From Saccostrea echinata (Eukaryota), in contig NW_026889796.1 in the NCBI RefSeq assembly GCF_033153115.1, positions 8,494,001-8,558,000 of the forward strand: a DNA stretch of 64,000 bases. The letters run 5' to 3'. Position 1 is the first letter of the stretch, and the number at the start of each line of letters is the position of its first letter. Made by a program: the position numbers and the translations under genes. Of the stretch, positions 14,052 to 61,585 are shown one piece after another. Under the pieces are notes generated by a model. That model was not told the origin of the DNA. It saw only the letters and a program-made list of their open reading frames with translations, and searched no databases.

Positions 14052-14924
14052 ATGGGTAATGTATATTGATGTTATTTTGGAGGGAAAAAATACGACATTA
14101 GGGAATCTGTTACAATTTTTTAAAAATAGAACTTATCTTAGCTCTCCAATTTGTATAAATTCAAAATAATAAAATGTATTTTTAAACTTTTAGGAAATTT
14201 CCCGGAATTTTTCCTGCAATTTTTTTTACATTAATAAGTACGCGTCTGGTTGCAATATGCCATAAATTACTACAGTGTATATTCGATTCTGATTATCATG
14301 TTTATCTCATTTCAATAAAAGATAGTTATTTGTTTCATTTATGTTACAGTTTAGGTTTTAAAATTCTTTTTCTCGTTTTGTATTCAATAGATTCAACATA
14401 AATTCTAAAAGAACTAAATACATGTATGTCTACGCATTATTGACCTCTCATTCCAAAATGAATACTCATGTACTTTAGTGTTCTATAGCATGATTTTCTT
14501 TAAACTAATTCCTTTAACGAGGACAATGAAAGTAAAAGACATGCATTTAAATTCCTACTTTGATCATATTAACATTTTCCACTACTTTTGTAACCGGACA
14601 TTGTTAACTGCATTATCGTAGGATTTCTATCATAATTTCCCAAAATGTTATATAAAGGCTTAAATAGTGTAATGGGCTATAATAATAATAATAATAATAA
14701 AAACAGTTAATTTTTTTTTCTATGTCAATCTTTTCTTCTACGAATTAATATGCGACAAATTGCAATATACTTGTTTCAAGAATGAAGGAATGAATAAATG
14801 AAGGAATGAATGAATAAATCAGTTAATCATTCTATTTCAGGTTGCTTCTCAGGTGGCCTAGCGCTATTCCTCCTACTTGTGGTTGCCGTGTACGTCACAG
14901 AATGCTCGAAATCGTCCAAATCAG
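14052..14924 (+). CDS. Gene 2 exons 1-2: signal peptide MGCFSGGLALFLLLVVAVYVTECSKSSKS
   Basis: ATG G|GTAATG at 14052-14055. Exon 14841-14924 (ttcag|...TCAG|GTAAGT, phase 1-1) encodes a hydrophobic core followed by a plausible cleavage site near TEC-S. Confidence 0.75.
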
Positions 14925-60800: not shown

Positions 60801-61585
60801 GATTGGTTATAATGTTGTTATGTGCGAATGTTTACAGTGGATGGCACGTGGGGAGTTTGGGGACCCTGGGCACCATGCTCGAAGACCTGTGGGGGTGGGA
60901 AACAACATCGTGAGAGAAAGTGCGACGACCCCGCCCCCGCTCATGGCGGCAGCGACTGTACAGGGGACTCTACACAGCTAGACGACTGCAATACTATTCT
61001 ATGTCCTTTGCCCTCATCGGGTCAATATGTGCAAGTAAGTATATTAAAAATTATTCACCAGTTTATTGTCATAAAGATATAACCATGTTGAGGCATCCAA
61101 TCTTAGTAGTGTGTTGTTCACGGTTTTCAATTTTTTTCATTTGACAAAATGGGCACACATAAGTTGTACTTGTCATTTTTTATAGAAATGCCCAAAGTTG
61201 TACCTGTCATTTTTTATAGAAATGCCCAAGGGGCTGGTTTACCTGTAAGAGTGGTGGCATCACCTGTATCGATGAATCGTTCAAGTGCGATTGTACTAAC
61301 GACTGCGACGACGGAAGTGACGAAGAAATTGCGTATGCTTCATGTACCATATCACAAATGCAGGGCTGTCAAAGTGGAACTGGTATTTTTTTCTTCTTTT
61401 TTTGTAACTGAAATAAACATTGGTATTTAATAGCATTGATAAAAAATTTCGTTATTTATTTTATATCCATGGTAGATTTGACTTGAATCTAATTAATTTT
61501 CAAAATAAAATTTACAGATCATGTGAAAATATCATGGTGGGTTCTGCTGCTGACGGTCTCCGTTGGACTTCTTGTACTGCATTAA
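14052..61585 (+). CDS. Gene 2 (span of ~88 coding exons): giant GPI-anchored Ly6/uPAR-TSP1-CBM14-LDLa repeat protein, about 3,858 aa
   Basis: Hand-assembled GT-AG exons all join in frame (sum 11,577 nt). Architecture: SP - 25x[LU(12 Cys, CCxxxxCN)-TSR] with 7 CBM14 - 2 TSR - LDLa - GPI-type tail. Whether all exons are used in one transcript is not shown by the sequence. Confidence 0.8.
14193..14214. promoter_or_regulatory. Overlapping NF-kB-like and STAT(GAS)-like motifs in gene 2 intron 1
   Basis: GGAAATTTCC (14193-14202), TTCCCGGAA (14199-14207) and GGAATTTTTCC (14204-14214). Motif match only. Confidence 0.3.
16219..16558 (-). mobile_element. tRNA-derived SINE, second family (different head, same core and tail)
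   Basis: 14-bp TSD ATGACGTTTTATGA at 16205-16218 and 16559-16572. Minus-strand head CCGTAGCTCAGTCGGTAGAGCG...GTGAGTTCG, shared core CCTTCGGATGAGACC..AAAAACCGAGG and (CAAT)n tail. Confidence 0.85.
18093..18596 (+). pseudogene. Dead CBM14 exon (pseudo-exon) of gene 2, split by a SINE
   Basis: DYQSLSTCNRFIKCSNPRLYDFKCPGSNVWDDK is homologous to the 20019 exon and continues after the SINE (TGTAAATGG...AAACCAG). The acceptor AG is lost, there is a frameshift, and the donor is mutated (CCAG|ATATAA vs CCAG|GTATAA). Confidence 0.8.
18237..18540 (-). mobile_element. tRNA-derived SINE nearly identical to the 8698 copy
   Basis: Near-identical sequence, with an imperfect TSD AAATTTAACTATGT (18223-18236) / AATTCAAACTATGT (18541-18554). 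Confidence 0.9.
18731..18815. repeat. (AT)n microsatellite
   Basis: About 42 uninterrupted AT units. Confidence 0.95.
18967..20198 (+). CDS. Gene 2 first module: LU (exons 18967-19049, 19279-19420), TSR (19558-19725), CBM14 (20019-20198)
   Basis: LU: RCYTCSYGKKNSDCTKIETCKKDEE|SCETKIRRDKDEIKMKCRKTKDCKTKCLPNDKECTRCCTGDLCN. TSR: WGQWSSCSEPCGGGKRSRSRQC. CBM14: CVKDCKGRKNGDYQSCSTCNGFIKCSNSKLHNFKCPGSTVWDDKSKRCEWTSTTC. Splice sites are canonical. Confidence 0.85.
20701..24096 (+). CDS. Gene 2 LU-TSR modules 2-3 (exons 20701-20783, 21007-21148, 21284-21448, 22146-22228, 23673-23814, 23932-24096)
   Basis: Same 83/142/165-nt exon triplet with GT-AG boundaries and phases 1-0-1-1. Introns have diverged from the downstream array. 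Confidence 0.85.
22450..23610. mobile_element. ~1.15-kb insertion (probable HINE/Helentron-type element) in an LU intron
   Basis: The paralogous intron motif AGTCCAG.TAAAA...AAGAA(A)GTTGGT..ATGAGCAGATG is split by this block. It has diverged internal repeats (CATGCATGT, AGCCAATCA, TTTTAAATTTCAAAGTA) and a terminal GTTC..AAACTT.GGGAAC hairpin. Confidence 0.6.
24613..44483 (+). repeat. Tandem array of ~6.5 copies of a ~3.02-3.05-kb, 7-exon LU-TSR-LU-TSR-CBM14 cassette (960 coding nt, 320 aa per unit)
   Basis: Unit starts at 24613, 27664, 30714, 33762, 36811, 39833 and 42856 (partial). CBM14 exons start at 27196, 30246, 33294, 36343, 39365 and 42388. Exons and introns are nearly identical between units. 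Unit 1 exons: 24613-24695, 24873-25014, 25136-25300, 25723-25805, 26102-26243, 26370-26534, 27196-27375. Confidence 0.95.
44559..60171 (+). CDS. Gene 2: TSR 17 plus eight older, diverged LU-TSR modules (18-25)
   Basis: Exons 44559-44723; 44821-44909/45072-45195/45799-45945; 46515-46603/49917-50040/50317-50463; 50817-50902/51181-51322/52504-52698; 52842-52927/53238-53361/54422-54568; 54956-55041/55397-55538/55965-56123; 56241-56323/56801-56936/57272-57406; 57835-57929/58151-58286/58407-58550; 59037-59122/59330-59459/60025-60171. Each LU keeps CxxC...CCxxxxCN. Confidence 0.85.
46620..46910. repeat. Degenerate ~22-bp minisatellite just after a splice donor
   Basis: Units resemble GTACA.T(G/A)AGGACGAAATGTA(A/T). 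Confidence 0.6.
47742..47983 (-). mobile_element. MITE with 5-bp TSD AATTG (same family as 53539)
   Basis: CATCGCCGTAGGAACCGGGG...GGCCTG flanked by AATTG at 47737-47741 and 47984-47988. It is the reverse complement of the 53539 element. Confidence 0.8.
49424..49458 (+). mobile_element. Helitron-like 3' terminal hairpin
   Basis: Perfect 10-bp GC-rich stem TGCCTGACGC-acgtg-GCGTCAGGCA followed by AAAAAACTAC (degenerate CTRR). Confidence 0.4.
49663..49780 (+). mobile_element. Short 3' fragment of the Penelope-like element
   Basis: CCTCCATGGCACCTGATCCCACCTCTGATGTTTTGGAGGCCCGTGTTTGCTCTGCTCC matches the reverse complement of 10808-10866. Confidence 0.65.
51450..52260. mobile_element. MITE remnant (ending GACGCCTATG at 51689) followed by a degenerate HINE/satellite remnant
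   Basis: G/C homopolymer-rich segment with the same terminus as 55641-55817. AAAATCTTCTCAAGAAC and GGGGAT.AAAG motifs of the 8061 satellite follow. Confidence 0.45.
53330..54215 (+). repeat. ~52-bp minisatellite derived from an exon 3' end and donor site, interrupted by a MITE
   Basis: The unit TGTTGTTCATCTACTGG.TGTAATAAAGGT(A/G)TGTATTAATGATCAACACC repeats the last codons (CCSSTGCNK) and donor of exon 53238-53361, decaying downstream. Confidence 0.75.
53539..53762 (+). mobile_element. MITE with 5-bp TSD ATTAA
   Basis: TIR CAGGCCCGTAGGAA / TTCCTACGGCCATG, with ATTAA at 53534-53538 and 53763-53767. Confidence 0.85.
55641..55817. mobile_element. MITE with CATAGGCGTC / GACGCCTATG termini
   Basis: Perfect 10-bp TIR, G/C homopolymer-rich interior, imperfect flanking CCTTA/CTTTA. 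Confidence 0.75.
58682..58990 (-). mobile_element. Old, degenerate copy of the SINE family
   Basis: (GTT/GGTT)n tail, GTCCCTTCGAGAAT.TTTTACTCA, GTGAGGGAT, CCGAAGGACC and ACGCTCTACC.ACTGCACCA. Confidence 0.65.
60510..61034 (+). CDS. Gene 2: two hemicentin/properdin-style TSR exons (60510-60698, 60838-61034)
   Basis: [43 protein letters not shown] and VDGTWGVWGPWAPCSKTCGGGKQHRERKCDDPAPAHGGSDCTG. Confidence 0.9.
61161..61228 (+). repeat. 34-bp tandem duplication spanning the LDLa-exon splice acceptor
   Basis: AAGTTGTAC(T/C)TGTCATTTTTTATAGAAATGCCCA at 61161-61194 and 61195-61228, one mismatch. Confidence 0.9.
61220..61382 (+). CDS. Gene 2: LDL-receptor class A domain exon
   Basis: KCPRGWFTCKSGGITCIDESFKCDCTNDCDDGSDEEIAYASC... 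contains the DCxDGSDE Ca2+-binding motif. The phase-0 acceptor at 61219 fits the preceding exon. Confidence 0.85.
61518..61585 (+). CDS. Gene 2 last coding exon: GPI-anchor-type hydrophobic C-terminus
   Basis: ...CQSGT|DHVKISWWVLLLTVSVGLLVLH-stop: small residues (S,G), a short spacer, a hydrophobic tail and no cytoplasmic part. AATAAA at 61647 and 61935. Confidence 0.8.

Follow-up and report, generated by a model that had tools for sequence, protein, structure and literature searches.

A giant oyster gene alternating LU and thrombospondin type 1 modules in Saccostrea echinata, with a predicted three-finger fold and a GPI-signal-like tail

A window of 64,000 nt from the oyster Saccostrea echinata (assembly GCF_033153115.1, contig NW_026889796.1, positions 8,494,001 to 8,558,000; coordinates below are those of the window) carries on its plus strand a chain of 87 coding exons that joins into a single frame and encodes 25 LU (Ly6/uPAR) domains alternating with thrombospondin type 1 repeats (TSRs), together with CBM14 domains and one LDL-receptor class A (LDLa) domain. 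The chain is probably one single-copy, expressed oyster gene for a giant extracellular LU-TSR protein, which would be tethered at its C-terminus by a glycosylphosphatidylinositol (GPI) anchor and act as a multivalent surface scaffold. Such a protein would consist of a signal peptide, 17 LU-TSR pairs with seven CBM14 domains, eight divergent pairs, two further TSRs, the LDLa domain and a hydrophobic tail. LU or three-finger domains are known to us singly or in sets of up to four, and 25–36 of them in one polypeptide, each paired with a TSR, widen the known use of the three-finger fold.

The exon chain and its modules

Module exons were located with iterated hidden Markov model (HMM) searches, started from one seed per exon type, in stop-to-stop segments of both strands. 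These gave 25 exons each of LU-N and LU-C, 27 of TSR and 8 of CBM14, every one on the plus strand between 18.0 and 61.0 kb and in the strict order LU-N, LU-C, TSR, with a CBM14 exon after some of the TSRs. Each exon type keeps its own phases (LU-N 1>0, LU-C 0>1, TSR 1>1 and CBM14 1>1), and the AG/GT chain is unbroken across all modules. Joined on the basis of phase, modules and transcripts, the 87 exons (14810-61585, all GT-AG) give a spliced model of 11,646 nt that translates without an internal stop into 3,881 aa, contains the CCxxxxCN motif 25 times and has a cysteine (Cys) content of 13.3%; a few splice sites (e.g., those of the 263-nt TSR exons and acceptor 60537) were exchanged for those that sister cassettes have in common or that transcripts show. 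The joined 3,881-aa model served for the frame check and for the motif and module counts, and the family, homology and fold searches were made with single exons or with database proteins of the same or orthologous genes. A sequence-only reading of the window had proposed about 88 small GT-AG exons in one frame of about 3,858 aa, with 25 LU, 27 TSR, 7 CBM14 and one LDLa domain and an end at 61585; the module array and the single reading frame are confirmed, the numbers found here agreeing almost exactly with the proposed ones, and the TAA stop ends exactly at 61585. The count of intact CBM14 domains is seven because the eighth copy (18088-18240) is a broken pseudo-exon, for which no phase-compatible splice pair was found and which passes into repeat-like sequence after the residues WDDK.

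Each of the 25 LU modules is split over two exons and contains both a CxxC and a CCxxxxCN motif and exactly 12 Cys, and the same cysteine pattern, written as a regular expression, fits 36/36 modules of Magallana gigas and 19/19 of Ostrea edulis. With twelve cysteines, the canonical disulfides would be exceeded by one or two. Taken alone, the exon halves remain below threshold in Pfam, with Toxin_TOLIP and UPAR_LY6 matched at N-terminal positions and UPAR_LY6_2 at C-terminal ones. The spliced module can be assessed in the RefSeq protein XP_061194691 of S. echinata, residues 101-315 of which are an exact copy of the spliced cassette that occurs six times within the model. Toxin_TOLIP aligns to this protein from position 2 to 72 of its 72 profile positions with 28.1 bits (cut-off 21.2), and TSP_1 and then CBM_14 follow; UPAR_LY6 stays sub-threshold (17.2 against 24.8). 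An Ostrea fragment likewise exceeds the gathering cut-off of Toxin_TOLIP, and the sequence matches of the LU module in the PDB are SLURP-1, PSCA and LYPD6. Six cysteines are found in 21 of the 27 TSRs and four in the other six. Canonical TSR exons pass Pfam TSP_1 with E-values of 2.5e-10 to 3.7e-15; the four-cysteine variants fail Pfam, align to the canonical TSRs with 97% probability in hhalign and match thrombospondin-1 in the PDB at E 9.5e-8. The CBM_14 match of a representative exon covers the full profile, with the solved CBM14 protein 4z4a as its PDB sequence match.

The fold of the LU module was approached through an AlphaFold model of one LU-TSR unit of Ostrea, built on an alignment that included the translated LU-TSR exons of the S. 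echinata gene. This model reached a predicted local distance difference test (pLDDT) score of 91.8 and a predicted template modelling (pTM) score of 0.72, and it replaced a single-sequence model of the 225-aa Ostrea fragment with a pLDDT of 37. Foldseek matched its first half to PSCA, CD59, bucandin, uPAR, LYPD6 and GPIHBP1 and its second half to thrombospondin TSRs; in the ESM Atlas, the LU-TSR unit met with nothing but generic TSR clusters, whose scores were too low to be useful. In VIA-align, with residues 1-71/77 of the model superposed, the Z scores were 9.6 for bucandin (root-mean-square deviation 1.6 Å over 62/63 residues) and for GPIHBP1, 9.3 for uPAR domain 1 and for LYPD6, 9.2 for Lynx1 and 8.1 for CD59, and the top 50 rows were all three-finger proteins or LU-like receptor ectodomains. 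Since Toxin_TOLIP is above its cut-off and a confident model superposes on LU structures, the 12-Cys module is predicted to be a three-finger (LU) domain, in keeping with the assignment first made from the sequence.

Table 1. Features of the LU-TSR gene in the window
Feature	Position	Strand	Details
First coding exon	14810-14924	+	ATG 14810; 15-residue hydrophobic core; phase-1 donor score 8.7
Degenerate CBM14 pseudo-exon	18088-18240	+	outside the model; CBM14 profile match; first Cys missing
Older 5' units	18967-24096	+	LU1, TSR1, CBM14-1, LU2, TSR2, LU3, TSR3; from the exon chain
Exons of LU1-TSR1-CBM14-1	18967-19049, 19279-19420, 19558-19725, 20019-20198	+	
Exons of LU2-TSR2-LU3-TSR3	20701-20783, 21007-21148, 21284-21448, 22146-22228, 23673-23814, 23932-24096	+	
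Tandem cassettes	24613-44723	+	3.05-kb, seven-exon cassette (LU, TSR, LU, TSR, CBM14); six full and a partial seventh
Cassette starts	24613, 27664, 30714, 33762, 36811, 39833, 42856	+	
Representative LU-TSR unit	27664-28351	+	LU-N 27664-27746, LU-C 27924-28065, TSR 28187-28351
Representative CBM14 (peritrophin-A) exon	27196-27375	+	phase 1-1; 8 Cys; Pfam CBM_14 E 2.2e-10, 41 bits against 22.1
Intact CBM14 exons (n = 7), starts	20019, 27196, 30246, 33294, 36343, 39365, 42388	+	8 Cys each
Conserved 3' core	44821-60171	+	LU18-25 and TSR18-25 in eight divergent pairs; 4 Cys in six of the TSRs
3' core exons, first part	44821-44909, 45072-45195, 45799-45945, 46515-46603, 49917-50040, 50317-50463, 50823-50902, 51181-51322, 52456-52698	+	
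3' core exons, middle	52842-52927, 53238-53361, 54422-54568, 54956-55041, 55397-55538, 55965-56123, 56241-56323, 56801-56936, 57272-57406	+	
3' core exons, last part	57835-57929, 58151-58286, 58407-58550, 59037-59122, 59330-59459, 60025-60171	+	
Two terminal canonical TSRs	60510-60698, 60838-61034	+	Pfam TSP_1 E 1.4e-13, 3.7e-15
LDLa exon	61220-61382	+	Pfam Ldl_recept_a E 7.7e-8, 32.9 bits (cut-off 24.1)
Last coding exon	61518-61585	+	polar spacer; 17 hydrophobic residues; TAA 61583-61585

Several repeats and irregularities accompany the exon chain. A repeat-like element is present in two copies (18240-18600 and 16230-16560) whose translations share the string GPRF.RSHPKD, and one of its copies interrupts the first CBM14 copy, leaving the pseudo-exon listed in Table 1. 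Most introns of the gene measure 100-700 bp; 46604-49916 (3.3 kb) and 14925-18966 (4.0 kb) are unusually long, and a single open reading frame (ORF) of at least 130 aa was seen in the two, at 47639-48046 on the minus strand. A tandem repeat with a 53-bp unit (3.9 copies at 70% matches; 53327-53538, with fragments to about 54000) begins in the 3' end of LU-C exon 53238-53361; it copies the CC..CN end and donor region of this exon into the intron, where it leaves decoy exon-end fragments that could supply alternative donors.

Transcripts, gene ends and oyster orthologues

Contigs from four public runs of two studies align to 55601-61600 at predicted exons only. They skip 14 introns, 13 of them with GT..AG ends that, after correction for the known offsets of the alignment, coincide with the predicted exon boundaries; at the fourth-from-last intron the letters were mismatched, and acceptor 60510 was set by the contig alignments and by a tblastn match of the M. 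gigas protein. Junctions are seen from 56123 onward and include 60698>60838, 61034>61220 and 61382>61518 (the last in four runs), and no exon-skipping junction was found among the contigs in 55601-61600. One contig of 3,489 nt spans 55963-61034 and continues about 1.8 kb further upstream, which, by exon arithmetic, would take it as far as the border of the cassette array. The 3' third of the gene is thus one spliced transcript. In the 923-Mb genome, the LU-C profile matches at these 25 places alone, so that the gene is single-copy and the contigs are transcripts; a processed retrocopy, considered as a source of the intron-less contigs, was rejected as unlikely on the same result. Within the intron that separates LU25 from TSR25, an element (59601-60000) reaches a summed contig depth of 24-2,584, compared with 3-16 on exons, and many loose contig ends enter other sequence there, so that it is probably an expressed interspersed repeat.

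At the 5' end, the phase-1 donor of exon 14810-14924 has the highest score in a scan of 11-19 kb. An alternative start is offered by a 4-nt ATG mini-exon (ATG 14052-14054) joined to acceptor 14841; both starts are equally workable and lead to an identical hydrophobic core. The start at 14052 in the sequence-only reading appears to be this spliced mini-exon, and the in-frame ATG at 14810 is equally good. A weaker signal-peptide-like ORF (18613-18694, phase-1 donor score 1.0) adjoins a long (TA)n/(ATAT) microsatellite (18700-18830) located just 5' of the first LU exon. At the other end, the protein would finish with small residues and a short polar spacer, followed by a hydrophobic run of 17 residues and a single further residue before the stop, with no cytoplasmic part, and the M. 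gigas orthologue carries a tail of the same type. LU proteins are often GPI-anchored. The signal-peptide-like first exon and the tail, both of which had been anticipated, match the layout of GPI-signal proteins as read from the sequence, with the first exon being predicted, and we infer that the tail is a GPI-attachment signal.

The gene has orthologues in Magallana and Ostrea. The LU-C exon profile found 18 proteins at E <1e-3 among 1.84 billion representatives, in clusters formed by oysters; the single non-oyster match is a weak one, to a three-LU sea-urchin protein. The models are XP_065925106 (M. gigas, 4,003 aa, SCO-spondin), A0A8W8ITE4 (M. gigas, 4,825 aa, UPAR/Ly6 domain-containing protein), XP_052704809 (Magallana angulata, 2,238 aa, SCO-spondin-like), XP_056004191 (O. 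edulis, 2,846 aa, SCO-spondin-like) and several short models of S. echinata (111-328 aa, uncharacterized protein or SCO-spondin-like). An older M. gigas fragment is named Hemicentin-1 and 'ADAMTS adt-like' is also used within the family. In the two long M. gigas proteins, Pfam detects 30 stretches of Toxin_TOLIP and 30-32 of TSP_1, and the profiles built here count 36 LU and 38 TSR modules in A0A8W8ITE4, together with a signal peptide, an LDLa domain and the same type of tail. The 3' core of the S. echinata gene is collinear with M. gigas XP_011422609, and its modules are orthologous one by one to those of M. gigas.

It had been expected from the sequence that automated pipelines would mislabel such a gene and miss its LU array. 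The names SCO-spondin, ADAMTS adt-like and Hemicentin-1 in the databases bear out the first point; the second holds for these names but not for the UniProt entry called UPAR/Ly6 domain-containing protein. Similarly, the LU-TSR polymer had been taken to lie outside any described family: a literature search found no paper describing the architecture or its oyster orthologues, but orthologues of 2,238-4,825 aa from Magallana and Ostrea had already been deposited. Two papers on oyster metamorphosis mention SCO-spondin genes, with identifiers that could not be linked to this gene. A large, lineage-restricted oyster surface or matrix gene is at present hidden under wrong names and, in one RefSeq annotation at least, broken into pieces, and omics studies of oyster larvae that cite SCO-spondin as a neural marker may for this reason misread genes of this kind.

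Array evolution and the probable role of the protein

The two parts of the gene have evolved in different ways. LU1-17 are 85-100% identical to one another (LU2-17, 97-100%), compared with about 78% to M. gigas modules. Most of them belong to the cassette array, which encodes LU4-17, TSR4-17 and CBM14-2 to 7 and whose splicing is identical to that of RefSeq XP_061194691. The full cassettes differ by 3-18 mismatches per ~3,050 bp (99.4-99.9% identity, introns included) and form nested subgroups, and an indel of ~28 bp is common to two copies. Because subsets of cassettes share nested substitutions and this indel, the sequences argue for real copies that arose by very recent serial duplication. 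Across the cassette region (20000-46000) the coding strand shows a strong positive GC skew (~+0.2), which drops almost to zero in the long intron at 48-50 kb. On the other hand, each of LU18-25 matches best the M. gigas module at the corresponding position (modules 29-36, 65-80% identity), and their identity to modules of their own protein (46-69%) lies below that of the cross-species orthologue match. The last eight LU-TSR pairs are thus one-to-one orthologous between genera, and the 5' array, with 17 LU-TSR pairs in S. echinata and 28 in M. gigas, has been homogenised within each species. The gene offers a natural setting in which LU-TSR interfaces and the concerted evolution of exon cassettes can be studied.

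The reading favored here is that of a C-terminally tethered scaffold at the cell surface. Anchored through the GPI signal in its C-terminal tail, the protein would stay at the apical surface of the cell, and the modules would form a beads-on-a-string rod of about 0.2 micrometres, as estimated from typical LU, TSR and CBM14 dimensions, with a role in multivalent adhesion or matrix organisation. Fixed partners would be bound by its conserved membrane-proximal pairs and matrix glycans by the fast-evolving distal array, with chitin binding as a lineage-specific, non-core addition in Saccostrea and Ostrea. A more tentative extension of this reading treats the LU-TSR pair as an undescribed composite block that has been polymerised into a membrane-tethered rod, in which the proximal eight pairs keep their partners, the distal array evolves concertedly and the array length and chitin inserts set reach and target, for instance on a mantle or larval epithelium holding chitinous shell matrix or a settlement substrate. 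If the chitin link were true, the protein would be a candidate tether between the epithelium and shell or periostracal chitin.

Several points weigh against the tethered scaffold or against parts of it. The RefSeq annotation of S. echinata splits the array into short models (XP_061194689 to XP_061194693, 111-328 aa), although each opens with an out-of-frame ATG within an LU-C exon and then shifts to the true frame, and for this reason they look like prediction artefacts. The transcript evidence spans the 3' part, with the 5' two-thirds and the first exon outside it, and the cassette copy number rests on one assembly; since 17 of the 25 LU modules are nearly identical copies of recent origin, part of the count of 25 reflects this haplotype assembly. 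The Ostrea unit that was modelled is another sequence, ~80% identical to the S. echinata unit. CBM14 domains number seven in Saccostrea and six in the Ostrea protein and none was found by profile counts in the Magallana models; because they are absent from all of the latter, chitin binding is not the core function of the family, and the chitin tether proposed in the sequence-only reading is weakened as a role common to all members. The anchor itself is deduced from the layout of the tail, and Retroactive, an insect LU protein with a predicted GPI signal, was not released by PI-PLC, a phosphatidylinositol-specific phospholipase C (PMC3561106), so that GPI anchoring of the oyster protein is taken here as no more than probable.

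The same observation on Retroactive lends some weight to a first alternative, in which the protein is a secreted or shed fibre or mucus component like SCO-spondin, its tail being a membrane span or removed, and polymerises or coats surfaces. The great length, the high cysteine content, the abundance of TSRs, the LDLa domain and the automatic names would fit such a protein. However, the EMI, VWD, TIL and CTCK domains of SCO-spondin, which include its means of oligomerisation, are missing in Pfam scans of the S. echinata exons and of the 4,003-4,825-aa orthologues, and the tail has the layout of a GPI signal, of a type conserved in Magallana, in a class of proteins that is commonly GPI-anchored. 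We regard a secreted fibre as unlikely.

TSR and CBM14 are glycan-binding module types, and a multivalent immune receptor could use them to recognize or capture the chitin and glycans of fungi, parasites or microbes, with the turnover of the array reflecting host-pathogen pressure. The independent expansion and homogenisation of the 5' array in each lineage (17 and 28 pairs) and the gain or loss of CBM14 between genera would suit this role, but the repeats are near-identical and not diversified, which fits a structural spacer better than a recognition repertoire, and the eight conserved pairs show ordinary one-to-one orthology, so that an immune function appears quite improbable. Finally, that the chain is not one functional gene but several small genes, a decaying repeat array or a duplication inflated by assembly is very improbable: three of the short RefSeq models are identical, one per cassette, the cassettes are nearly identical down to their introns and one CBM14 copy is broken, yet 11,646 nt run over 87 exons with no stop, the RefSeq fragments begin in the wrong frame, substitutions and an indel are shared by subsets of cassettes, orthologous models reach 4,003-4,825 aa and a spliced contig of 3.5 kb joins the 3' exons.

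Comparison with known systems

SCO-spondin, hemicentin and the ADAMTS/adt proteins, whose names have been given to this family, resemble the oyster protein by their many TSRs and, for SCO-spondin, by its LDLa repeats and its nature as a giant secreted protein. Beyond the SCO-spondin domains mentioned above, neither the metalloprotease and disintegrin domains of ADAMTS nor the VWA, Ig and EGF domains of hemicentin were found in Pfam scans of the exons, the orthologues, the Ostrea fragment and XP_061194691. Retroactive, which is required for chitin organisation through Knickkopf trafficking, is likewise an LU-type, extracellular, membrane-associated protein tied to a chitinous apical matrix (PMC3561106). 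It differs in being a single LU domain of 150 aa without TSR or CBM14 and with GPI anchoring unconfirmed, and the two proteins are related by fold class alone.

The closest relatives are the oyster orthologues, which share the alternation of LU and TSR, the 12-Cys LU module and the terminal order of TSR, TSR, LDLa and hydrophobic tail. They differ in the number of LU modules, which is 25 in S. echinata, 36 in M. gigas and 19 or more in O. edulis, all of them being computer predictions with automatic names. Among vertebrate LU proteins, uPAR has three LU domains, CD177 four, C4.4A and TEX101 two, and CD59, Lynx1 and GPIHBP1 are single-LU proteins. The oyster protein is like them in its predicted three-finger fold (Z 7.6-9.6 to uPAR domain 1, C4.4A, TEX101, CD59, Lynx1 and GPIHBP1), its CxxC and CCxxxxCN motifs, its predicted signal peptide and its putative hydrophobic C-terminal signal. 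It differs from them in having 25-36 LU domains instead of one to four, 12 cysteines per domain instead of the usual 8-10, and a TSR after each LU, with CBM14 and LDLa domains in addition.

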